Shown: positions 2,404 through 39,738 of the stretch, one piece after another
Layout: each line of letters begins with the position of its first letter
Numbering within the stretch: the first letter of the stretch is position 1
DNA from: Perkinsus chesapeaki ATCC PRA-425
Taxonomy: Eukaryota; Protista; Perkinsozoa
Length of the DNA: 39,738 bases
NCBI GenBank assembly: GCA_013115145.1
Contig: JAAPAO010000321.1
Coordinates: forward strand, 1 to 39,738
Reading direction: 5' to 3'
Made by a program: the position numbers and the translations under genes
Notes under the pieces: model-generated
Databases searched by the model: none
What the model was told of the DNA's origin: nothing
What the model saw: the letters and a program-made list of their open reading frames with translations, nothing else

Positions 2404-3993
2404 AGGAATAGAGAGAAGCAATTTAAATGGGGACAGCGAATTGTGTGCATATTTGAGCAAATCGACAGCTCGATCTCATTTACATTACTGGCTTTGGTTT
2501 TCCCGTTTTCCTATGGGACGCCGGCCCGTACTCCCACCGACGTGGGAATCTTCAGGGGAAAGAGCTTGGTACTTTCGTCGCCTGCACAACTCGGATGGAC
2601 GGCGTTTGAGATGGTAAGAATGAACGCGAACGCATCCGCGCCAACAGCAGTCTTTCAGCTGGGCGGTGGTTTTACTTTCCGATGGTGATGGTCTTACTGA
2701 GGAGGATGCCACCGCTGTAGTTGTTGAACCAAGTGAGGAGGATCTAATTGAGTAACATCATCACGAGAGTGACATCAAGTCATCATATTTTTCAGGTTCA
2801 TTCATTCCCATTTTATGGAGCTTGTATACGGTCCGACTGGTGACCACTACAAGAGTCTACCTTATCGTTTGATGCTTATTACGTCTAATAACGAGATCGA
2901 TTGGGATAGAATGGCCAGCATTAAGGAAGCTATCGAGAGCTCTAGTTGGCAGCAGCCTGTGTAGCCGCGAGAGTTTACCTCGCAGTAGTGCTTCATTTTT
3001 AGGTCGCCAATCGCGCTGAAATATCCTTCGTTGGTATTGGCGCGTCACGTTACCACTAAAGCACCTCGGCCCTATCTCGTTTGGTCAACGGTTCCTGATG
3101 CGACGCCAAGCAGTGTGTTTGTGGAACGTGATGCTTGGAGTTCGAAAGGAACCAATACGGAAATGATATCTTTAAAAGATTTGTACAAACAGAAATATCA
3201 ACTCGACACAGATGCTTCCCAGGAAGTTTTCATTGCCTCGGCCAGTCCAGCGCCGTTGAAGCCTGGCGGCAAAGCAAAACCACCGAGCTCGAAATCAACC
3301 GTTTATTTGCTGCCTCACTACGTGCAAGTTCACCCCGTTGAAGTGGGGGCATCTGATAGCGATGAAAGAGTTAAATCTGAGCTCCAAGAAGATGTTCCGT
3401 TTGGCCTTAGGCTCCTCGCGAGAGACATTGCTATTGCGCATGTGTGTGCGTGCTTGAGGATATCTCTGTCATCCACTTCGGCAATGTCAGAAGCTCTTTC
3501 GGCTTACGATGGTCTAAATGGTCGCCTGGCTTGGCTCGGTGATGCTTTTTGGCGAGTTCTTGTTAATGACCGGTATTATTGGTCCAACGATTACCAGGCA
3601 GATTCATTCGTAGAGCTTTGTGATAACTTTCCTTGTCTGGCCGAAGCAACACTTTACGAGCCTCTGACGTTGATGCCACCGAAGAACCCCCAAGCCGTGC
3701 GTAATAAACGTTACGCTGATACGTTTGAGGCGATACTGGGGGTTGTCGGGCTGCACCAATATAAGCAAACTGGCTCTATCGAACAAGCTGTCGATGAGAT
3801 GGATGATCTGGAATGCTTCATCACGCCAGATGTCCGCAAGGGTAATGTGAGGAAGTCACCCGAGACCATCGAGTGGAGGAATCTGAGATGTTCGTTGATT
3901 GTTTGGAAGGAGTTCTCCAATGAAGGTTCGCTAAGCAAAATGAACGAGCGAAGGAATGCTCTTTTAACATCAATTATCAATTCACCGCCTTAA
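2404..3993 (+). CDS. Minimal Dicer-like protein: platform + PAZ + connector + single RNase III domain (about 490 aa; start codon uncertain)
   Basis: By-eye model: exons 2404-2613, 2648-2751, 2796-2960 and 3003-3993, joined in frame by GT-AG introns. DVGIFRGKSL, LIEFIHSHF and IDWDRMASI resemble the Dicer platform. SLKDLYKQKYQLD..QEVF and VYLLPHYVQVHPV resemble PAZ (TFAEYYKTKYNL..QPLL / LVPELCAIHP). RLAWLGDAF and KRYADTFEAILG are RNase III signatures. Confidence 0.8.
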
Positions 3994-4067
3994 CCGTTTC
4001 AATACTTTATGGATCGGTGTTGTGGAGCTTCATAATAAGTATCTTTCGGCAGTGCCGTGGTCACTAA

Positions 4068-4485
4068 ATGACGGATTCTGAGAAGCAGCTTGACGATGTT
4101 GAGGAGTTGACAAAAGCCACTCCGTGCTGTCAATCGGCTGCTGCTGCTGAAGAGCCTTTACCAGAAGAATGTCGAAAATGTCCGGCCAATTGGGTAAGCA
4201 TGACAAAGGGATGATCTCATATCCTCGTTGGTTATACTTGCATTGTTGTAAGTTTGAGCGATCGCCTCGTTCATATTGGGAGTCATGCTCTTACCGGCTC
4301 TAAAAATTATGTCAGGAAGTCATCATCTTTGCCGTTTTTTTCTTGAAATGTTTTTATGTCAGGTTTGTCATTACAAGGGCCCGAATGGAGAAACGAGGGG
4401 CTGTAAAGACAACAGCTGGCATGCTTTCCATTGTTGGCAGAATCATAGAACTCAAGAACGGGACGATATTTGGGCGGGCCTCTGA
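4068..4485 (+). CDS. Small Cys/His-rich hypothetical protein (about 82 aa, 2 exons)
   Basis: ATG 4068, exon to 4193, GTAAGC...TCAG intron, exon 4363-4485 in frame: MTDSEK...CCQS...CRKCPANW/VCHYKG...GCKDNSWHAFHCWQNH...GL*. Confidence 0.55.
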
Positions 4486-4709
4486 TGATTTTCGTTACTT
4501 TACCCAAAGCGTTGTGTTATTTATTCAGTCAGGGTGGTTCAGCTATTCGGTCGTTGGTTACCAAGCTGGTCAGTTCTTGGCCGTGATGGTGTCAGCTTTA
4601 TACTGCAGGCAGCATTGACATTTTACACTCTCTTCTGTTTGCGGGAAAGGTGTCTCTGGTGACTCTATTAGGAAGTACTGAGGCACGTTGAAGTATCTTC
4701 CTGGTGGCT

Positions 4710-12012: not shown

Positions 12013-12202
12013 CGGTAGTACTTTGAGTAATACTAGCGAGGTTGATTATTGTTTGATGGAAATTAACAGTATGAAAATATTTACCTTTTCGGTTATCCCC
12101 ACGGTGATTTGAAGCGCTGAATGAGAACTGATATCTTTCACCGATTGATACTCGTGAATTTCAACCTCGAGAATCCTTTTAGTTTGCGCATGCGTGCAGA
12201 TA

Positions 12203-13342
12203 ATGAATAGTCTCTTTTTATCGGCTGCGGCTCTTCAGCAGCATCCATCTGATCAAGTGATGGAATCATCATCGAATGGGGGTAATACCAAATTGGGGGG
12301 GAGTTTTGAAAAAGTCGGTATGAGTGGTGATACTGTGCGAGTGCATTTTATTGATAACACTTATCGGGACATCAGGAATCTGTCCCCCGACACAACCGTG
12401 TCAGAGCTCCTCTTCAAGCTCCAGCAGAAAGATTCAAAAGCAGGTCGAATGAACATTTATTTCGTGGCGAGCGGTCGGATAGGGGTATATGAGAGGAAGC
12501 TCGAGGAGTCGGAGAAACCTCTGAATGTCTTCCATGAAGGAACCACCGGTAAATTAGTTGTCCATTCGCCTGGAGAAAAGTTAACCTCGAAAATATCTTT
12601 TGTCGATCAACCTGAAAGTGCTCGTGGAGATGTCCTGAGGCGCGGCTGGCTCGACAAACTTTCATCTGACGGTAAAAAATGGAAGCCGAGAATTTTCACT
12701 TTGCGGTCGAACACCCTGACATATGGTGCTGAAGGCAGGCCGGAGAGGACCCTCGATTTGGTGAATTGTGAGAAAGTTGTCGCCGGAGATGGGCGGAGCG
12801 ATGCGGGAGAATCTAAGAGAATCTTCAGGGTTGTTATGGACACACGGACGTTGACTTTGCGCGCCACTACTGCGGCTGATCGAGACATGTGGGTGCTGTC
12901 GGTGGCGAAGAGCGCGGCAATTTTGAAAGAGAATAAGATTCTGGAGCAAGCTTCGGTGGCGATGAGAGAAAATAATAAGAGGAAGATGAATTCGGAGATC
13001 AAAGGGCTGTTTTCGTTGACGCAAAGTGTCGACTCACTGTTGAGTTTTTCCTGTGAAGCTCGAGATGTTTTTTTAAGCCATACGATCGATTGTGTGGAGA
13101 GCAGTCAGGAGGCCGAGGGGGAGGATATCGATTACCAGGGCGTGCGCGATTATGTCATGGGGTATGGAGAGCCTGGCTTGAGGGAAAGAATTGGGGAGAA
13201 AGAATTTGATAAGATTGACGGGTGGATGAAAAAGAAAGCTTTCCCAGTTATTATTAATAGGGAAAGCTTTTTGACACGCTTGGCGCAAATTTACGCGGCG
13301 AAGCCGAGGCGGTCTGAGAGCTATTCTCAGTATCTTGACTAG
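12203..13342 (+). CDS. RA/ubiquitin-like + PH domain protein, possibly with a degenerate RGS-like C-terminus
   Basis: VRVHFIDNTYRDI...DTTVSELL is RA/FERM-F1-like. LRRGWLDKL...KWKPRIFTLR...TLTLRA....DRDMWV is a PH domain. Confidence 0.8.
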   Translation: MNSLFLSAAALQQHPSDQVMESSSNGGNTKLGGSFEKVGMSGDTVRVHFIDNTYRDIRNLSPDTTVSELLFKLQQKDSKAGRMNIYFVASGRIGVYERKLEESEKPLNVFHEGTTGKLVVHSPGEKLTSKISFVDQPESARGDVLRRGWLDKLSSDGKKWKPRIFTLRSNTLTYGAEGRPERTLDLVNCEKVVAGDGRSDAGESKRIFRVVMDTRTLTLRATTAADRDMWVLSVAKSAAILKENKILEQASVAMRENNKRKMNSEIKGLFSLTQSVDSLLSFSCEARDVFLSHTIDCVESSQEAEGEDIDYQGVRDYVMGYGEPGLRERIGEKEFDKIDGWMKKKAFPVIINRESFLTRLAQIYAAKPRRSESYSQYLD

Positions 13343-13634
13343 AAGCGTGCAAGATGCAAAATTGGTCAACTTGGCAGTATGTAATATAGTAGTATCCTAG
13401 TGGTATCCTTGCTTGAATCGCACACGGTGAAGATGGGCTAATCTGGAGAGGAGTGTGTAGTGGTGAGAGTATACTGGTTCGGGATTTGAAGATATCTTGG
13501 CTTGAAGCGTGCAAGGCACAAAACAGGCTAATTTAGAGACCAGTGTTAGCTTGGTTTATGGTAAAATATATGTGTTTGTGATTTGATCGTATCTTTGCTT
13601 GGAGCGTGCAAGATGTAAGGTAGCTCAACTTACG
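13330..13634 (+). repeat. Four degenerate ~46-bp direct repeats (GTATCTT..TTGAAGCGTGCAAG...GCTAA..AG) with unique spacers
   Basis: Units at 13330, 13403, 13492 and 13589; spacers 25, 43 and 52 bp. Confidence 0.8.
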
Positions 13635-13720
13635 TACCATTCATGTATCTTTCATCCTCCTCCCATTTCTCTTGAATTAACCTTCCCTCACCTTTGCCAG
13701 GATTGTTTTCTTCTTTTCAA

Positions 13721-16397
13721 ATGGCAAATGTCTCTACAGAACCATCATCATCTCCTCCTCCCCATCAAATAACTTTCGGTCCCTCCGAAGACCCCCATCG
13801 GTATCGCCTAGGCAGGCAGATCGGCGCCGGTGCCACTTCAAAGGTTTTCGAATGTGTTAGAATCGCCGACGGGCAAGTGCTTGCCGTGAAAATCATGGCA
13901 CTGGGTCAGGTCAATGCCGACCCAGATCGAAGCGAAGTTTCTATCTTGAAGCGTTTGGACCACCGGAACATCGTCAAGGTGTTCGATGCCATACCTCGAG
14001 GACCGCTCATTTACATGGTGATGGAATATGTGGGCGAAGGAGAGCTATTCAATTCGATCATTACCGATGAAAGATTCTCCGAAGAAATGGTGGTGAAATT
14101 TATATTCTGTCAAATTGTCGACGCCCTCCTCTATCTTCACAGCAATGGTGTCATCCACCGCGATCTCAAACCTGAGAACATCCTCATTGCTTCGACCCAC
14201 ACCGGGACATCTGAGGACCCTCTGCCGCTCGGCTACCCCCTCGTAGACGGTATGACTTTCTATCCGATAATCAAACTTGCCGATTTCGGCCTTTCCCGAG
14301 TGGTCACATCAGCCACGCTCGGTCGAGCCACGACAGTTGTGGGAACTCCTCAATATTGGGCACCAGAAGTGATCAAGAGCAAGGAGACTGGTGCTGGTTA
14401 TGATGGTCGGGCAGACAACTGGAGCCTCGGAGTCTTACTCTTTGTCATGCTAGGTGAGAAAAGCGCGCCATTACGATCGATTTGGGTCGAGGGGAAATAT
14501 TGGTTAATGCGAGCAACAAATAGCATGTTCCTGAAATCATTTTTTAACTATTTTCCCGTATTTTTTCCATGCAGAAAAACTGTGAAATGATTATTGGATC
14601 GTGCTCTATGATCGGTCAGTTATAGTTCTATACCAAATGTTAATAATAAATTTGATGGATGTAGAAGTGTGGTACATGGTAGGTTTTATGATCGAGACAC
14701 TTGAAAATTTTTAGGGACGGAAATTCTGTATGCGAGCTCACGGCAGTGTGGCAGATTTGACCAATAAAACGAATTAATTTTCCCTATGGTTATACGTTGG
14801 ATTGAACCAGAGTCCTCCGGGTTCAAAGCCGGACATCTTATCCTTTTCAGCTAAGCGTTACCCGTTCACAGCGAGCAAGAAGAATGGCTTATCTATTAAT
14901 GATCGTATTCGTCGTGGAGAGTACTCCTTCAATAAAATGGAGGATGTCTGCCCCAAGGCCAAGGATCTCATCAGTCGGCTTATAGTCGTCGACCCAGCTA
15001 AACGCATCACTCTCGAAGATGCGCTTCATCACCCTTGGCTGGCCGACTTTCCTCTAGCAGTGAAGCTTGCTCATACGTGGACGCCGACGATGCCGCAGAC
15101 GCTTGTTGCGGAATTGCCAGGCATACTGTCAACGAAATCATCGGTGGTGATGCCGAGCGCGGTCGAGGAGGATCTCAGCCCGATTGCTAGTGAGGATGGA
15201 AGTGTACGGGAGTACCCAGTAGGCGTTAAAATTGTGGACGGAGGGAAGTGCGAACTGCCAACAATAAGGTCGAAAGATTCTGCGAAACGTGAGCTCCTCA
15301 GGCCAAACGCAGATGACGGCTTCGGTGCGAAGGCCGCCGAGAAGCTGAGACTTGATGAGCTTTGCAGCGCTCAGATGAGCGCTTGTGATTTGCTTCGGCA
15401 GGTCTACTTCTTGCTTCAAGATAAGCCTTTGGTGCAGGACAAGGTCGGGGCATTCATCTTGGACGCCCGCCAACTGCGCCACTCTACGACTGCCATTATG
15501 GGCAGATGTGCTGACATCGCCGAGGTTGTCGAGACGGATATCTCGGACATGACCCTTTTCGTTGAGGAAGGGGTGCCGGAGTGCGCGGTAGATTGTATGG
15601 CTTCGGTGAACTCGAAGTTGGTGGGGATGACGGAAAGCTGTGAAGAGCTTCAACAAGGACATGCACGGTTGGCTGCTCGAATGCAGAAGATAATTTCGGT
15701 TTTGCCCGGCGCGGCAAGCCGGTTGTCTCAGAAGCAACTACAAGCTATCAGCTACTACGAAAACGAATTACTCGACGGAGCTTCGACGGACAAATCCGCC
15801 CAAACTCTGGCGCTGCTCTTCGATCAGCTCGGTAACGTCTCTGAGGGAGGCTCACCGCTCGATTCCAGCTCGGACATTGCAGATGTTTACGACTTGCCGT
15901 TTTTGGCAGCCGGTCATGTCGTGTCCAAACGCGCTGGTAGCGCCGATACGACCACAACTACAACCTCGGTGAGTTCAGAGGCGGACAGTTCTACCGAGAG
16001 CAGCTTCGGCTCCTCCTCCTCGTCGTCTGCCGATCCTACTCGGTTGGTTGCGCGAAGCCTTGCCAAGCTGCGGAGAGTCGATGAAATCCTCTCTAGGATG
16101 TCTAATTTTTGGGCGAGTGTCGACCAGTCTGTGGCGAAGCTGTCCGACATGAGGGAGAACACCGAGAGACTTTTGCGGGGAGCGACGAAGTCTGACAGGA
16201 TCCTCAATCTCTTCAAGTCTCGAGCTGTCGAGTACCAAACTTTCTGGAGGGAATTTGGGCAGTCCTGCCGACGGTATGCGGAAGTGATGAGCCAAGGCAG
16301 CCAGAAGCTGACGGAACCTTTGGAGGTTACGAATCTTCCCGAAGCCGCCTCCCCGATCTCTGGGCGTTTGCCGGCGCTGAATGAGCAAGAAGCATAA
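13721..16397 (+). CDS. Ser/Thr protein kinase (CAMK/CHK2-like catalytic domain) with a long helical C-terminal region; 2 exons
   Basis: GAGATSKV, LAVK, HRDLKPEN, DFG, WAPE and DNWSLGV are all intact. Intron 14454-14850 (GTGAG...TTTCAG) joins ML/AKRYPF...RITLEDALHHPW. Confidence 0.93.
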
Positions 16398-25131: not shown

Positions 25132-27285
25132 ATGTTATTTGCCCCTCTCTTATATCTCGTTTTATTGGTATCGCCAATCGTCGCCCCCTTCCCGGATAGG
25201 CCGGTTAGGGATGTGGTATTCGCCTTGTTTGATGCACTGCCTGGTCAAGTACAAACCGATGATATTCCTCCACCTTACAATACTCGTTTTGATGAATCTA
25301 ATGGATACCTACCAAAGGCTATGGTCTACGTTAAGTCCGTCGAGGACATTATCACTGCCTTAAAAATCTGTCATGATGGGCCTGCTCCAGTAGCTTTGCG
25401 CAGCAACGGTGGTCATTCTTATATCGGCCAGTCTACCGTACATGGTGGCATTATCATCAACTTTAGTCAACTGAAAAACTTTGAAGTGACAGTTGAAGGT
25501 GGTCGTTATATCGCTAAACTCGGTTCAGGTCTCAAAGAGCTTGAGGTTTATTCAAGACTAGCTCGTCATGATCCACCTCTAGGATTCGCTGGTGGTTCGG
25601 GCTCGACTGTTGGTATTGCTGGGTTGATTTCTGGTGGCGGTCATGGTCTATCTTCCGCTATGTATGGGCTTACCTCTGATAGGGTTGTTGCTGCTGAAGT
25701 CGTTGTCTATAATAGAGAGGAAGATAAGTTCGAGTTGGTTACTGCAACTCCGTATAACCAGCATTCTGAACTTCTATTTGCCATTCGCGGTGGCATGGGC
25801 GGTAATTATGGTGCTTTGGTCTCCCTAAGCTATGATGCTCCTGTCGTCACTAACGTCGTCACGCTCTCTAATAAAAACTTTGAGGTTAATCCAACCCTTC
25901 AAGCCCAAAGGATAAAGGCCTTCCAAGACTTCATGCACTCTGCCGAATCTGGTCCTGAGATATTCGGTATCGGTAAGTTCCTCGGCGGTGGTGGAATTCA
26001 ATACAGTGCACAATGTATTTGTGACTTGACTGGTGATTGTACTTCTTGCCACGCCAAACTTGACAAGATGGAGGCAGCTGTTGGCCTGTCTACTACCGCT
26101 CTCCGTGTAGAGCAAGATTACGGTAAAGCTATGTGGTATTGGGCTGACTGTACCGTCGACTCCTGGAATGATTTCTACCCTCCTGAAGGGATTGCCAATT
26201 GCAGTGAAGAGGATATGCAAGAAGCGATGGAGAGGTGTTGGGAATTCGACAGAGCTTTCTATGGCGGTCCTTATAAGGCCAAGTCAATCTACTTCCCTGT
26301 TGACATGAGAATGGAAGACCTTGAGTCTCTTGCTCAAGCACACGTCGATCCTCTATGCCGTTCACCGGGTGATTGTGTTACTCTTCTTGACTTCTACGGT
26401 CATGCTATGTCTGTCGAGCCTGATGAATGTAACGGCACCCATGGCAAATGTACTTCTTTCGATCACAGGACACCTGGTTGGCATATGCAAATGCTTTCCA
26501 TTTGGGAGGAAGGCGAACCTACACCTACCGACAAGCTGCAGTGGTTGCAAGAATCTTATGAGGCTGTCCTCCCGGGCTCGCTTGGTACTGCTTATCAAAA
26601 CTATATCGACTCTGATTTGGCTGAAGGCCGTCAGTGGGTTAACCAGTACTTCCCTGATGCGGATACTTATCCTCGACTTCAACAGGTGAAATGCAAATAT
26701 AATGGAATAGATATGTATAACTTCTACGCGATTGATTTGATGACAGTTGATATTGACGACGAGATATGTGGCTTTGAAACTGATACTACTACCCCAGTGA
26801 TTGATACTACTACCCCAGTGGTCGATACTACTACCCCAATGATTGATACTACTACCCCAGTGATTGATACTACTACCCCAGTGATCGATACTACTACCCC
26901 AGTGATCCATACTACTACCCCAGTGATCGATACTACTACTCCAATGATAACTACTCACGTAACTGACACGACGGTTCATCCTTCTGACTTTATTACTACC
27001 AGTGGTGGAGGCTGTGATGGAGCTGACAGGAAGTGTGCTGATGGATATCCGGGCTCGTACTGTATGTCTTACAAGAGTCCGTCAGTCTGTTGGGGGAATA
27101 ACATTCCATGTTCATGCTCATCAATCACAACAGTATCGTCTTCATCCAGCACTCATTCCATTGCCGCCACCACTTGTGATCGTGAGGACCTTCGGTGTGC
27201 TGGCTTGAGAGTTGGTTCTTACTGTAAGTATTGGTCGTCCCCTCCACACTGTTGGGGGACCTCAGAACCATGTGACTGCAGTTGA
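25132..27285 (+). CDS. Secreted berberine-bridge-enzyme-like FAD oxidoreductase with Thr-rich linker and two Cys-rich modules, intronless
   Basis: Signal peptide; RSNGGHS (FAD His); STVGIAGLISGGGHG; LFAIRGGMGGNYG; BBE motif AYQNYID...YPRLQQVKCKYN; then (DTTTPVI)x8 and two C-x6-C-x5-GSYC-x8-CWG-x4-C-x-C modules. Confidence 0.92.
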   Translation: MLFAPLLYLVLLVSPIVAPFPDRPVRDVVFALFDALPGQVQTDDIPPPYNTRFDESNGYLPKAMVYVKSVEDIITALKICHDGPAPVALRSNGGHSYIGQSTVHGGIIINFSQLKNFEVTVEGGRYIAKLGSGLKELEVYSRLARHDPPLGFAGGSGSTVGIAGLISGGGHGLSSAMYGLTSDRVVAAEVVVYNREEDKFELVTATPYNQHSELLFAIRGGMGGNYGALVSLSYDAPVVTNVVTLSNKNFEVNPTLQAQRIKAFQDFMHSAESGPEIFGIGKFLGGGGIQYSAQCICDLTGDCTSCHAKLDKMEAAVGLSTTALRVEQDYGKAMWYWADCTVDSWNDFYPPEGIANCSEEDMQEAMERCWEFDRAFYGGPYKAKSIYFPVDMRMEDLESLAQAHVDPLCRSPGDCVTLLDFYGHAMSVEPDECNGTHGKCTSFDHRTPGWHMQMLSIWEEGEPTPTDKLQWLQESYEAVLPGSLGTAYQNYIDSDLAEGRQWVNQYFPDADTYPRLQQVKCKYNGIDMYNFYAIDLMTVDIDDEICGFETDTTTPVIDTTTPVVDTTTPMIDTTTPVIDTTTPVIDTTTPVIHTTTPVIDTTTPMITTHVTDTTVHPSDFITTSGGGCDGADRKCADGYPGSYCMSYKSPSVCWGNNIPCSCSSITTVSSSSSTHSIAATTCDREDLRCAGLRVGSYCKYWSSPPHCWGTSEPCDCS
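26782..26949 (+). repeat. 21-bp coding tandem repeat x8 (DTTTPVI)
   Basis: GATACTACTACCCCAGTGATT units read directly. Confidence 0.95.
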
Positions 27286-28451: not shown

Positions 28452-29402
28452 ATGTCTTGCTTCCGTGTGACTCTGGTCCTCGTTATTGTTATAAAAGCTC
28501 TCTACGTGGCTTATCCGGATGACGAATACTATGAAAGCAAGCAGAAAATCTACTTTGAAGCGATAAGAGTACCAGATGCGTGGAAGCAGCTGGAAGGACA
28601 TGAAAGATCCCCTAAGACTATCGCCGTCATCGACACTGGTATGGACTCGACTCATCCCGACTTGAAGGACAACGCTGTGGTTGGATACAACGTGGTCGAT
28701 AAGAGCACGGATACTCGTGACAAAGATGGCCATGGAACCAGAATGGCTGGTATTGTCGGGGCAGTCATTAATAATAAGATTGGCATAGCAGGAATCACAG
28801 ACCATGTCAAGTTGATGCCAATCTACGACGGTGACACCGAAGAGGACACTTACGTTGCAGCAGCAATTGAATACGCTGTGAAAGCACATGTAGATGTTAT
28901 ACTCTACACGTCGGTACAAGAAGAACCATTCGAAGATGCGGCCGTTGCTGCTCTTCAGAGCGCTTCTAAGGCTGGCATCCCCTTCATCTGCTCGTCCGGC
29001 AATGATGGTCTTGATATATCGAAACCGGGAAATCAGCGTTACCCTTGTGAGTATGCTAAAACGATCGATGGTGTCATATGCGTGGCAGCCACTGTCATTA
29101 AAGAGATGGAGCTCCTAGAAATAAGCAACTATGCTCCCTATATCAATGCCGCCGCCCCAGGGTATGCTTTCTCTACTGATCTCAATGGCAAGTATGTTGC
29201 TCGCGCTGGTGCGTCTTGTTCTGCTGCTATGGTAGCTGGAGTAGTGACCATGATGAAAAGTGTGTCCAAAGAGCCTTTAAGTGTCCAGGCTATAAATTCT
29301 ATCATCAAAGAGACTAGCACTCCTGGGATTGAAAGGAAGGGAGTTCAAATGGACTTTGGAAGGCTGGATGCCTTGGCGGCAGTGAAACGTGTTCTGGGCT
29401 AA
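28452..29402 (+). CDS. Secreted subtilisin-like serine protease (S8), intronless, no prodomain
   Basis: Signal peptide; Asp IAVIDTG, His DGHGTRMAG, oxyanion Asn SSGNDG, Ser GASCSA; thermitase-like mature start YPDDEYY...IRVPDAW. Confidence 0.92.
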   Translation: MSCFRVTLVLVIVIKALYVAYPDDEYYESKQKIYFEAIRVPDAWKQLEGHERSPKTIAVIDTGMDSTHPDLKDNAVVGYNVVDKSTDTRDKDGHGTRMAGIVGAVINNKIGIAGITDHVKLMPIYDGDTEEDTYVAAAIEYAVKAHVDVILYTSVQEEPFEDAAVAALQSASKAGIPFICSSGNDGLDISKPGNQRYPCEYAKTIDGVICVAATVIKEMELLEISNYAPYINAAAPGYAFSTDLNGKYVARAGASCSAAMVAGVVTMMKSVSKEPLSVQAINSIIKETSTPGIERKGVQMDFGRLDALAAVKRVLG

Positions 29403-37612: not shown

Positions 37613-39097
37613 TTAAGATATAATACTAGGTAACTGATGAGAATAGAGCCATTTGGATACAGACCAAACAAAACCTAGCTCGGTCAACCCGGCCAAAAGC
37701 AACGAACCTTCATACCATAATCCTCCTTGCGGATCTTCATAAAACGGTCCATGGAATAAACCTAGGCCGCAAGTGAACTGGGACAAGCTTGTGAGTATAA
37801 TAAATGCGAAGGCATAAAGGATACCCAGGAGCAAATGACCGCGTGGCTGAAGCTTCTTCCCCGCCAGCTTATGGACAAAGAGCAACATCAGCGGAACTTG
37901 AAAAGAACGTATGAGCACAGGTAGGAGTCGCGTACGAATTGCCCATGGGAAGGTCGCTGAAGCACACGGGAATTCCGGAGCTGACCCGATTGAGGCAATA
38001 TTCGCCATTGGCCTTTCCCACTCCGTGAACATAACCAGTAGTGCTGAGGCAGCACCATAAGCTATACTGGGTACAAATGAGGCTGACATGATCCTCAATG
38101 ACGTCGGAGATAAGAACCACATTGGTGCGTGTTCCTCCGTCCCTCTCCCGACGCAGAGACGTTTCACCACTGCAGCAAAGTTGGCCTCCGAACCATACAT
38201 TCGGCGGATGAGCTTCGTCAGCTTCTTATGGTCTTCACGCGATGTACATTTGGCGCGTCTCAGACTGAAAGACTTCACCTTCGACGCAAAAGTTGTCCAT
38301 TCGTCGAAGCAGCGATACGCTTGACGGCCCACCAGTATATAGGCGGTCAGATCACCAAGGACACTGCAAAACATAAAAGTACCAGATTCGCGGTCAATAT
38401 TAAATATGCGTATCCACTGGATGAACATTTCGAGTAGATGAAATACCAATAGAGATACACATAGCTTCACGTGACCAAGATTAACTACGATGACATCCTC
38501 CTTGTCGTGAGTTTGCATAAAGACAGCTAACTCGTAAACACACCATAGACGATCGAGATAATTTGGGGTCCAAAGGATGATAATCTTGTCCGATTTTTGG
38601 AGATAATCGGACAATCTCCAAATCCCTCGAGCCTTCGCTGCATAATTAGTTTGATCTATACAACACTTGTCGAGAAAGACTGTAGTGTTGCGATGTTGAT
38701 GTAGTGAAAATAAAAGTGTAGAGATTACAAATGTTAATAACCCGAGTATCATAACGGCATTTCTGTACCAGAAGGATTGACGGAAACGATACAGTGTAAG
38801 GCATACCCCTAGTAGAGACAACAACACCGTTGTTTTATACGCGATAGGCGGACTGCAACATAATAGAAGGGCGACTTGCTTCCAGCATCCGCTATCGCAC
38901 CATGCGTGGCTCAAGAAAATGTCGAGCGAGCAGACTGGAGCTGACATACTGTGGGCAGCAATAGGGTCATCAGAGCTCCGAAGTAGAGACCGATTACATA
39001 GTAGTGTAGATAAAGAGCAGCCTCGCAGAGGCTCCTCCGGTCGAGATGCACTTGCCACTTCCTCGTTATGGCGTGAATGTAGGCAACGAGAAGACAT
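37613..39097 (-). CDS. Polytopic membrane protein with a TM-interrupted TIR-like domain, intronless
   Basis: DIFLSHAW (betaA), two TM helices, VFLDKCCIDQ (betaB), SDKIIILWTPNYLDRLWCVYEL (betaC/alphaC with the Glu), then several further TM segments. Confidence 0.8.
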   Translation of the reverse strand: MSSRCLHSRHNEEVASASRPEEPLRGCSLSTLLCNRSLLRSSDDPIAAHSMSAPVCSLDIFLSHAWCDSGCWKQVALLLCCSPPIAYKTTVLLSLLGVCLTLYRFRQSFWYRNAVMILGLLTFVISTLLFSLHQHRNTTVFLDKCCIDQTNYAAKARGIWRLSDYLQKSDKIIILWTPNYLDRLWCVYELAVFMQTHDKEDVIVVNLGHVKLCVSLLVFHLLEMFIQWIRIFNIDRESGTFMFCSVLGDLTAYILVGRQAYRCFDEWTTFASKVKSFSLRRAKCTSREDHKKLTKLIRRMYGSEANFAAVVKRLCVGRGTEEHAPMWFLSPTSLRIMSASFVPSIAYGAASALLVMFTEWERPMANIASIGSAPEFPCASATFPWAIRTRLLPVLIRSFQVPLMLLFVHKLAGKKLQPRGHLLLGILYAFAFIILTSLSQFTCGLGLFHGPFYEDPQGGLWYEGSLLLAGLTELGFVWSVSKWLYSHQLPSIIS

Positions 39098-39738
39098 GCA
39101 AGACAAAGAGTAGCGCCTGCGATGAACGAATCACTTGTCAACAATAAACGAGACGAATATCTCGGTTCCCTAAGTGGACCTATCTGGATTTGAGGGGTTT
39201 TTCTCAAAGCTAAACCCTCTACCATACGACTCATTTGGAGGCCAAATATCGGAGAAGGGAAAACTAAAATGTTCGCCTACATCTAGATGATGCGGATGAC
39301 CTTCGCGCGTCACCTTGGCTGTCTCTTTTCTTGTCACGTGGAGCACCCTGCTCCGAGACCCATGAACATGTAGCCACCCGGAACTTCCGGGCAGGAAATA
39401 GAGCGACGCGCCGCTCTTCGGCTGTAATATACGCGTATCATATTATATGAATACATTGTCACAAGAGGCAGCTTAGTTCTCGCAGTAGTAGACAAATATT
39501 GAGCGGGATTCCGCTCGAGCCGGGCTATGGTCACGGCTATTTAGTATGCTCGCGCTGCTGTAGGTTCTGCTTGGGATTCTCAGGTGGGAGTAAATACATA
39601 TTCTCACGGAAAACGGTAAATCGTTACGGAACAGTCTCGCTCGCCCTAATCTATTCTCTGCGCGCACTTTCGGTTAATTCTCACGGAAACCCTGTAATGG
39701 TCCCCTGTTGCATCGGGTTTCTGGTTTACCTTTATAAC

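Follow-up and report, generated by a model that had tools for sequence, protein, structure and literature searches.

The four-exon gene FOL47_005815 of Perkinsus chesapeaki, annotated as encoding a "hypothetical protein" on contig JAAPAO010000321.1, yields a 449-residue product that corresponds, in profile comparisons and in its predicted fold, to the N-terminal half of a Dicer of the minimal type known from Giardia, with putative activity. The protein carries a PAZ domain, a connector and exactly one RNase III domain, with nothing more; this architecture, claimed in the original prediction, is upheld and is conserved across several lineages. Judged by its sequence, the gene is genuine and belongs to a small family with one layout, represented in P. 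chesapeaki and P. marinus as well as in several uncultured protists whose genomes are compact.

Gene structure and boundaries

Removal of three GT-AG introns (45, 44 and 42 nt), which a plain list of open reading frames overlooks and the original prediction had recognised, gives a spliced product identical to the NCBI protein P0001 (Table 1). However, the start at 2404 and the length of about 490 residues proposed at the same time have to be replaced: the frame from 2404 lacks an ATG and has no conserved counterpart in P. marinus, and the coding sequence begins at the ATG at 2513 and encodes 449 residues. An exon opened at 2404 lies in another frame than exon 1 and runs into a stop codon when joined to the conserved intron-1 acceptor (2658/2659). 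The frame from 2513 is kept among homologues, with MGRRPVLPPTWE in P. chesapeaki, MGRSPSPPTW in P. marinus and MGIGRIFYEDWE in distant relatives. An assembly frameshift in the G-run after the ATG at 2427, hiding a start of MGQRIVCIFEQ (similar to MGIGRIFYEDW), was considered and rejected because both P. marinus and the distant relatives align in the 2513 frame, Trp-Glu falling at matching positions.

Table 1. Features of FOL47_005815 and the acceptor site of the following gene in the window.
Feature	Position	Strand	Description
Exon 1	2513..2613	+	from start codon at 2513; codes for residues 1-33 plus 2 nt; carries the N-terminal motif MGRRPVLPPTWE
Intron 1	2614..2658	+	45 nt, GTAAGA...TTTCAG; P. 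marinus intron 46 nt, position and phase identical
Exon 2	2659..2751	+	N-terminal region with acidic stretch; WAV(V/L)LL motif kept in P. marinus
Intron 2	2752..2795	+	44 nt, GTAACA...TTTCAG; P. marinus intron 42 nt, position and phase identical
Exon 3	2796..2960	+	possible platform remnant; PAZ region opens near residue 115, about 2944
Intron 3	2961..3002	+	42 nt, GTAGCC...TTTTAG; P. marinus intron 49 nt, position identical
Exon 4 part 1, PAZ domain (begun in exon 3)	3003..3348	+	residues about 115-235; VIA-align, profile, Pfam
Connector helix	3349..3459	+	residues about 236-272; model helix and collinear DCL1 alignment
Single RNase III nuclease domain	3460..3849	+	residues about 273-402; Pfam Ribonuclease_3, VIA-align
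C-terminal two-helix tail and stop	3850..3993	+	residues 403-449; stop codon 3991-3993
AG acceptor for spliced-leader trans-splicing of next gene	4051..4052	+	cDNA contigs, 2 libraries

The P. marinus orthologue (444 residues, 50% identity) has four exons with matching intron positions and phases, and in tblastx exon 3 is 54% identical to P. marinus L007 5884-6039. The metagenome relatives are intronless, uninterrupted open reading frames of 443-497 residues with an identical layout, flanked by unrelated genes, among them PDZ-like and ATAD3 genes.

Both borders of the gene are closely set. Upstream, an MFS transporter gene ends at 2022, 490 nt away. Downstream, the following gene gives its own spliced-leader (SL) trans-spliced mRNA, which starts at 4053, only 60 nt past the stop codon; in cDNA contigs from two libraries, a DinoSL-type leader of 22 nt is attached at its acceptor. 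The acceptor therefore places the 3' end of the FOL47_005815 mRNA at most 60 nt from its stop codon, and the two neighbours together leave no coding room for lost domains. SL-primed 454 contigs cover the downstream gene, and no reads fall on FOL47_005815 in these tiny RNA libraries. The stop codon is conserved in P. marinus and the intronless homologues end alike; together with the trans-spliced neighbour, this bears out the earlier proposal that no second RNase III exon follows. Across the window, that is, the whole 39.7-kb stretch of DNA analysed, there is one linked pair of RNase III signatures, located entirely within FOL47_005815. No RNase III or dsRBD partner gene was found among the neighbours of the homologues in their contigs, nor was a partner found in the window.

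The family alignment comprises nine sequences (P0001 and eight relatives). P0003 as a query found three further members, a word-index search with the family profile gave no new ones, and a scan of JGI metagenome contigs with the family alignment matched 533 pattern stretches, none of which was upheld by tblastn.

Overall fold and relationship to Dicer

The fold model, computed from the nine-sequence alignment, has a mean pLDDT of 62.5 and a pTM of 0.50, with residues 1-58 unreliable; a single-sequence AlphaFold model (pLDDT 35) was discarded. The leading fold matches are Dicers or Drosha. In the Foldseek comparison suggested with the original prediction, the best 35 PDB matches are Dicers, as are 30 of the 30 Swiss-Prot matches listed. 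Using VIA-align, the whole model reaches Z 13.9 for Drosha versus 13.4 for Dicer. The family profile matches Arabidopsis DCL1 with an E value of 1e-14, running collinearly from the PAZ domain through the connector to both halves of RNase IIIa. From this profile match and the modelled fold, the nuclease domain is judged most like the RNase IIIa of Dicer or Drosha.

PAZ domain, connector and N-terminal region

Residues 115-233 of the model superimpose on the PAZ domains of human Ago1/Ago2 and Hiwi (Z 9-9.6, rmsd 2.1-3.0 Å, VIA-align), so that the predicted PAZ fold ahead of the nuclease is recovered. A Pfam PAZ match is present in seven of the nine family members, every one under the curated cut-off, and the family profile matches the PAZ domains of DCL1 and human Dicer (E 1e-5 for the latter). 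Four residues of this domain, K184, Y185, H230 and P231, are invariant across the family, and K184, Y185 and H230 belong to motifs with aligned counterparts in the Dicer PAZ, which speaks for a capacity to bind RNA ends.

The connector is formed by a model helix at 238-270, which is collinear with DCL1 1310-1390, located between the PAZ domain and RNase IIIa, and falls inside the stretch matched by human Dicer 839-1082. Of the collinear platform, PAZ and connector that had been claimed, the latter two hold, whereas the platform is not detected by sequence and is weakly supported by the fold model. The Pfam platform family has no match in the family proteins, even at an E value of 10. The aligned part of the Dicer fold matches, AlphaFold DB entries among them, starts at model residues 54-63, and in a few at 14-17, and residues 1-58 have a pLDDT below 35; the poorly resolved N-terminal region of the model may represent a platform remnant.

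RNase III domain and active site

The nuclease domain contains one pair of RNase III signatures, RLAWLGDA at 3526-3546 and YADTFEAILG at 3715-3741, and superimposes on bacterial RNase III with a Z of about 10 and an rmsd of 3.0 Å over 120 residues (VIA-align). The Pfam family PF00636 (Ribonuclease_3) matches P0001 with an E value of 2e-4 and 22.5 bits, under the cut-off of 27, which it passes in P0002 and P0011 with 32 and 30.2 bits, respectively. Exactly one such domain was detected by Pfam in all nine family members. Helicase, DUF283, dsRBD, Dicer-platform and second RNase III domains gave no Pfam matches in P0001 or its eight aligned relatives; together with the signature-pair scan of the window, this agrees with the earlier statement that helicase, DUF283, dsRBD and a second RNase III are all missing.

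The active site differs among lineages. Both Perkinsus proteins read RLAWLGD, in which the equivalents of E. coli E38 and E41 are replaced (by G/T and A, respectively), with Ala296 at the E41 position in both species, while the non-Perkinsus lineages carry the canonical E(R/K)LEWLGD signature. Of the metal-binding carboxylates, corresponding to E. coli E41, D45, D114 and E117, the Perkinsus proteins keep three of four (D300, D359 and E362 for the last three) despite a sequence divergence of about 50%. Five other aligned sequences possess all four, and P0013 has an Asn at the D114 equivalent. The E38A and E41A single mutants of the E. coli enzyme each have weak activity (PMC8708148), so that with both glutamates gone little catalysis may remain. 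The missing signature glutamates therefore weaken the case for the Perkinsus protein as an active dicer, and by its active-site residues its cleavage may be weak or partner-dependent.

W297, at the position of E. coli F42, is invariant across the family, which speaks for a capacity to dimerise. This position is presumably the ball of the dimer interface. In E. coli, F42W is active, and F42G, F42D and F42R are inactive (PMC8708148).

Comparison with known Dicers and RNase III enzymes

In Giardia intestinalis Dicer (PDB 2FFL), built as platform-PAZ-connector-RNase IIIa-RNase IIIb, the domain order is identical, and helicase, DUF283 and dsRBD are absent on both sides. Residues 32-461 of the Giardia enzyme align to residues 15-428 of the model, and 2FFL also appears in the Foldseek results. 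However, Giardia Dicer goes on to a bridging region and RNase IIIb, giving an intramolecular processing centre, whereas in the Perkinsus protein nothing but the tail follows the one RNase III domain. The plant DCLs, Arabidopsis DCL1 (7ELD) and DCL3 (7VG2), are the best profile matches (E 1e-14 and 4e-8), aligned in order over PAZ, connector and RNase IIIa, but these are proteins of 1600-1900 residues carrying a helicase, DUF283, a second RNase III domain and dsRBDs.

In the case of Drosha (PDB 6LXE and 6V5B), which gives the top whole-model Z, model residues 254-449 superimpose on Drosha 866-1191 at 3.3 Å, but the sequence matches are confined to the nuclease domain. The PAZ-like domain of Drosha is not known to have an end-binding pocket. 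Bacterial RNase III (Aquifex aeolicus and E. coli) shares the nuclease fold and the aromatic residue at the F42 position, and by analogy a homodimer would be expected for the Perkinsus protein as well; the bacterial enzymes differ in possessing a C-terminal dsRBD, in lacking a PAZ domain and connector, and in having four catalytic carboxylates compared with three in Perkinsus.

Budding-yeast Dcr1 and Entamoeba histolytica RNase III resemble the Perkinsus protein in having one RNase III domain per chain, an arrangement that requires dimerisation, and both work as dimers (PMC7827160). All single-RNase III non-canonical Dicers are described as lacking PAZ, with product length set by the spacing of adjacent dimers (PMC7827160). 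The present family differs in possessing a PAZ domain and connector and in lacking yeast-type dsRBDs, and its conserved layout contradicts the rule that single-RNase III Dicers have no PAZ or ruler (PMC7827160). In the family-profile comparisons, no sequence match to yeast Dcr1 or the Entamoeba proteins ranked above the Dicers. A layout joining PAZ and connector to a single RNase III domain is not listed in the Dicer reviews consulted, and a Thalassiosira protein considered as a precedent was set aside, its papers describing PAZ with two RNase III domains. The literature search found no experimental RNAi studies in Perkinsus.

Proposed assembly and alternative explanations

A single RNase III domain cuts one strand, and the protein must therefore pair with another RNase III domain. 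The best explanation overall, a tentative one to which we give slightly less than an even chance, is half of a Giardia-type Dicer whose nuclease is paired in trans, as a homodimer by default, with the PAZ domain and connector measuring the product. By analogy with single-domain RNase III enzymes, the homodimer would be the default pairing; the PAZ domain would grip the 3' end of the dsRNA and the connector would fix the cutting distance in a Dicer-like manner. Such a dimer would be two-fold symmetric, with one PAZ domain at either end. In a symmetric homodimer, the second PAZ domain would stand in the path of a long dsRNA, which counts against this form of pairing.

An unlikely alternative is a heteromeric Dicer, in which the PAZ domain, the ruler and a IIIa-like half-site reside in this protein, and a separate RNase III protein, perhaps together with a helicase-DUF283 protein, would act in trans to rebuild an asymmetric centre. 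Kinetoplastid editing endonucleases, in which catalytic RNase III domains are paired with degenerate ones, provide a parallel. The partly degenerate Perkinsus active site argues for such a division, as does the domain's best alignment, which is to the place that RNase IIIa occupies in DCL1, Drosha and Giardia Dicer, but the non-Perkinsus members have the full catalytic set and would need no partner, no linked RNase III partner gene occurs in the window or the contigs of the homologues, and homodimers are the rule for most known single-domain RNase III enzymes (PMC7827160). The protein might instead bind RNA ends without cutting, the Perkinsus RNase III domain serving as a dsRNA-binding or dimerisation module while the PAZ domain binds, sorts or passes on small RNAs or hairpins. 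This is doubtful: the loss of both glutamate equivalents in the two Perkinsus orthologues, the weak activity of each E. coli alanine mutant (PMC8708148) and the independent change from D to N at another metal ligand in P0013 fit it, but some activity remains in E. coli E41A (PMC8708148). Retention of three of the four metal carboxylates in Perkinsus despite its divergence, and of all four in most other members, likewise speaks against a purely binding role.

Eukaryotes generally need a processing RNase III of the Rnt1 or Drosha type, and the fold match to Drosha over the whole model is as strong as that to Dicer. A processing enzyme for structured RNAs (pre-rRNA, snRNA, snoRNA or SL RNA), whose PAZ domain would locate a defined 3' end, is nevertheless improbable, given that the best sequence matches are plant Dicer PAZ and RNase IIIa, that the residues aligning with Dicer PAZ motifs are conserved, and that nothing links the family to rRNA processing. 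The least probable reading, largely refuted and very hard to sustain, is an artefact, either a truncated pseudogene or a mis-annotated piece of a two-domain Dicer. The sub-threshold Pfam matches of the protein and the lack of reads in the tiny RNA libraries would accord with it; however, the reading frame is intact, the four-exon structure and the stop codon are conserved in P. marinus, metagenome relatives of similar length and layout are uninterrupted frames lying between other genes, and the flanking genes leave no space for lost domains.

It is conceivable, though on present evidence somewhat unlikely, that the family constitutes a distinct class of Dicer-type enzymes, acting either as a symmetric two-PAZ homodimer that measures a short duplex or hairpin from each end, or as one component of a Dicer divided in Perkinsus among separate genes for its helicase-DUF283, PAZ-IIIa and IIIb parts. 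If so, a PAZ-measured dicing centre can be assembled from separate chains. The family may furthermore be a living analogue of a stage preceding the duplication of RNase III, and it provides a natural case in which to ask if a PAZ ruler is able to serve a nuclease centre built between chains.

C-terminal tail

The nuclease domain is followed by a helical tail of 47 residues, with helices at 409-424 and 430-445 (pLDDT 80-92). A vestige of RNase IIIb was ruled out for this segment by an hhalign probability of 0.1%. Three residues of the tail, L414, S417 and R437, are invariant across the family.

Gene model of the half-Dicer

The half-Dicer is a new architectural variant within the Dicer/RNase III family. 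In a protein search, the ORF at 3010-3990 gave a 100% match to FOL47_005815 (P0001, 449 aa, "hypothetical protein"), whose source contig, JAAPAO010000321.1 (39,738 nt) of GCA_013115145.1, is identical with the window. Perkinsus is a mollusc parasite basal to the dinoflagellates, whose mRNAs receive a spliced leader by trans-splicing (PMC3101222). The coding sequence was rebuilt with its translation forced to equal P0001 and with GT-AG ends required, and a single solution was obtained; hence, the three short GT-AG introns of the original prediction are real. Its start at 2404 had to be abandoned, as that frame lacks an ATG and hits a stop when the conserved intron-1 acceptor is used, and its length of approximately 490 aa is corrected to 449 aa.

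The question of the start and frame is settled by the P. marinus locus (L007, GG685288.1), which conserves the frame from 2513 (MGRSPSPPTW, against MGRRPVLPPTW in P. chesapeaki), and the earlier first-exon frame was thus wrong. The P. marinus introns of 46, 42, and 49 nt match those of P. chesapeaki in position and phase, and the rebuilt product of 444 aa shares 50% identity overall and 45% within its first 122 residues. As annotated (XP_002767381, 340 aa), this orthologue is missing its N-terminal part. The distant relatives start with MGIGRIFYEDWE or MAIGRILFEDWP, sharing a Trp at the same aligned position. In both Perkinsus species, all introns of the gene are 42-49 nt GT-AG introns with a pyrimidine-rich 3' end, easily overlooked by an ORF-based reading.

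Features of the half-Dicer locus, its relatives and its neighbours (window positions unless a contig is named; L007, P. marinus GG685288.1; L003, L005, and L006, metagenome contigs)
Feature	Position	Strand	Basis or detail
FOL47_005815 exons	2513-2613, 2659-2751, 2796-2960, 3003-3993	+	Splice reconstruction equal to P0001
FOL47_005815 introns: 45 nt (GTAAGA..CAG), 44 nt (GTAACA..CAG), 42 nt (GTAGCC..TAG)		+	Same reconstruction
Half-Dicer introns, both species	2614-3002; L007 5708-6096		GT-AG, short
P. marinus orthologue	L007 5601-7072		Four-exon model parallel to P. chesapeaki, giving 444 aa
Shared mini-Dicer/PDZ-like/ATAD3 order	L003 8001-13149; L005 603-2834; L006 99-3115		
Downstream gene CDS	4068-4193 + 4363-4485	+	Spliced-leader cDNA contigs, 169-nt GT-AG intron
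Kinase with PH and RA domains	about 12194-16397		Pfam
FAD-binding/BBE oxidase + subtilase	25132-27285 and 28452-29402	+	Long ORFs, Pfam
Weak TIR-domain match (E 4e-5, below cut-off)	37613-39106	-	Long ORF, Pfam

End of the protein

Four lines of evidence agree that the half-Dicer protein ends after one RNase III domain, which bears out the prediction of a stop without a second RNase III domain before the next gene. The stop codon lies at the same aligned position in P. chesapeaki and P. marinus (...NSPP* and ...NSPL*, respectively). In two 454 metatranscriptome libraries primed on the spliced leader, cDNA contigs agree with the window letter for letter over 4051-4192 and again from 4362, as far as 4465 and 4497, respectively, omitting an intron of the downstream gene. 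Preceding 4051 are 22 unmatched letters, AGTCCGTAGCCATTTTGGCTCA, a dinoflagellate-type spliced leader, and the acceptor AG at 4051-4052 is 60 nt past the half-Dicer stop codon. Because the leader-bearing contigs join at 4051, the downstream gene is a separate trans-spliced mRNA. A six-frame motif scan of all 39.7 kb of the window turned up a single linked pair of RNase III signatures, and the relatives from other organisms are unbroken ORFs ending at the equivalent point. On the other side, the upstream MFS transporter gene ends at 2022; therefore, no room exists upstream for helicase or DUF283 exons.

A conserved family

Searching 1.84 billion representative proteins exhaustively by HMMER, with the single sequence P0001 as the query, returned four matches besides P0001 itself: the P. 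marinus orthologue, two metagenome ORFs (497 and 443 aa), and a 2031-aa TPR protein, a repeat protein according to Pfam, which was set aside as unrelated. A word-index search with the metagenome relative P0003 added three further members of 489, 405, and 482 aa. The metagenome relatives are single ORFs within gene-dense eukaryotic contigs. P0003 has a gene for ribosomal protein S10 on one side and, on the other, a PDZ-like gene in convergent orientation, and the order mini-Dicer (+), PDZ-like gene (-), and ATAD3 (+) recurs in the contigs carrying a second relative, P0005. This common local gene order points to related uncultured protists as the sources of P0003 and P0005, with genomes that are compact and poor in introns (GC 0.49-0.54).

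Pfam detected Ribonuclease_3 in all nine aligned sequences and PAZ in seven of them, with every PAZ match under the curated cut-off; none of the nine gave a match to a helicase, DUF283, platform, or dsRBD, in line with the predicted absence of helicase, DUF283, and dsRBD. The layout of PAZ plus one RNase III domain is thus a conserved property of the family and no annotation accident.

Dicer homology and fold

Of all PDB sequences, Arabidopsis DCL1 (7ELD, E 1e-14) is the one that the family profile matches best. Profile positions 120-323 are collinear with DCL1 1214-1395, a stretch that runs from the PAZ over the connector into RNase IIIa and takes in the first half of that domain; its second half (DCL1 1498-1542) is matched by profile positions 375-419. 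Next came DCL3, Drosha, the PAZ of human Dicer (950-1031, E 1e-5), Giardia Dicer, and bacterial RNase III, and Piwi PAZ domains also matched with marginal E-values.

An AlphaFold2 model of P0001, built from the shallow nine-sequence alignment, is of middling confidence (mean pLDDT 62.5; residues 100-449 mostly 60-90, residues 1-58 below 35). The 35 best Foldseek matches in the PDB consist solely of Dicers (E from 2e-6), among them those of mouse, human, and Giardia, DCL3, DCL4, Dicer-1 and Dicer-2 of the fly, and the platform-PAZ-connector cassette of human Dicer. Dicers likewise make up all 30 matches listed from AlphaFold DB Swiss-Prot, where model residues 15-428 correspond to Giardia Dicer 32-461, and model residues 59-275 to human Dicer 839-1082. 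The AlphaFold DB clusters gave both named and nameless matches, the named ones being without exception Dicers, Dicer-like proteins, or proteins with an RNase III domain. By VIA-align, residues 115-233 superpose on the PAZ of human Ago1, Ago2, and Hiwi (Z 9-9.6, rmsd 2.1-3.0 Å, 89-97 residues), residues 254-402 on Aquifex and E. coli RNase III (Z about 10, rmsd 3.0 Å, 120 residues), and the whole model on Drosha (Z 13.9) and mouse Dicer (Z 13.4).

The original prediction largely holds: through the DCL1 profile match and VIA-align, the PAZ, connector, and RNase III parts of its layout stand. The platform placed before them is unproven: no sequence model detects it, and its sole support is the Dicer fold alignments, which start at residues 54-63 in a low-confidence region.

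PAZ and catalytic residues

In the PAZ region, Lys184, Tyr185, His230, and Pro231 are invariant across the family, and Tyr181 is present in eight of the nine sequences. These residues sit in the motifs (D)LYxxKY and LLPxxVxxHP, aligned with YYKTKY and LVPELCAIHP of human Dicer, two human motifs that contribute to the 3'-end pocket. A Cys replaces the conserved PAZ Tyr in the family member P0013.

The non-Perkinsus members carry the canonical E(R/K)LEWLGD signature and, in all but one, the ADxxEA motif. Both Perkinsus species possess (G/T)RLAWLGD in place of the former; the residues corresponding to E38 and E41 of the E. coli enzyme are gone, and those corresponding to D45, D114, and E117 (Asp300, Asp359, and Glu362) remain. 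Among E. coli RNase III mutants, E38A and E41A are weakly active in vitro, D45A is of low activity in vitro and inactive in vivo, and E117K/A/Q are inactive (PMC8708148). Based on these mutants and the loss of both glutamates, the Perkinsus enzyme is plausibly a weak nuclease and perhaps not a nuclease at all. P0013 (L008 1421-2869) has an Asn at the D114-equivalent metal ligand (IANVTEA) and may represent a second, independent case of active-site decay. Trp297 is the counterpart of F42 in E. coli, a residue whose exchange for Trp (F42W) is tolerated, in contrast to F42G/D/R (PMC8708148). This Trp is invariant in the family, consistent with a conserved contact between RNase III domains in a dimer.

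Proposed mechanism and comparison with known Dicers

A single RNase III domain cuts one strand, and a processing centre consists of two domains, supplied by two chains or by one. Known single-domain RNase III enzymes homodimerise (PMC7827160). In the likeliest mechanism, the half-Dicer would pair through its own nuclease domain, with the 3' end anchored by the PAZ and the distance to the cut set by the connector. A homodimer of this kind would have two-fold symmetry and would flank its catalytic valley with two PAZ domains, a geometry that should suit a duplex or hairpin of approximately two ruler lengths better than dsRNA of unlimited length, unless the second PAZ can move aside. Alternatively, pairing with an RNase III protein from another gene would bring back the asymmetry of Dicer and would be consistent with the partly degenerate Perkinsus active site. 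Both pairings were offered in the original prediction, and this functional interpretation is reasonable as a hypothesis.

Two RNase III domains are stated to be the only universal feature of Dicers (PMC2724275), whereas the half-Dicer has one. The single-RNase III non-canonical Dicers of budding yeasts and Entamoeba all lack a PAZ (PMC7827160), in contrast to the half-Dicer, and in another account yeast Dcr1 is the one single-domain Dicer mentioned (PMC10328071). Dicer-like proteins in P. marinus have been remarked to be detectable by BLAST (PMC6027434). In the literature covered, which is incomplete, neither a description of the PAZ plus one RNase III architecture nor experimental work on Perkinsus RNAi was found, which is absence of evidence only.

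Neighbouring genes

None of the TIR, oxidase, subtilase, and kinase loci of the window is tied to RNA silencing. The downstream gene (4053-4497) is absent from the called genes of the NCBI record and encodes an 82-aa, Cys/His-rich product with the core ...ECRKCPANWVCHYKGPNGETRGCKDNSWHAFHCWQNH...; neither exon matches Pfam. It is kept at the same position in P. marinus, with 71-89% identity by tblastx. For 4147-4487, the spliced-leader-primed marine metatranscriptome libraries include one contig identical to P. chesapeaki and a second approximately 90% identical (17 differences in 172 nt). This variant, which also occurs in a small library labelled P. chesapeaki, may be allelic, paralogous, or derived from a sister strain.
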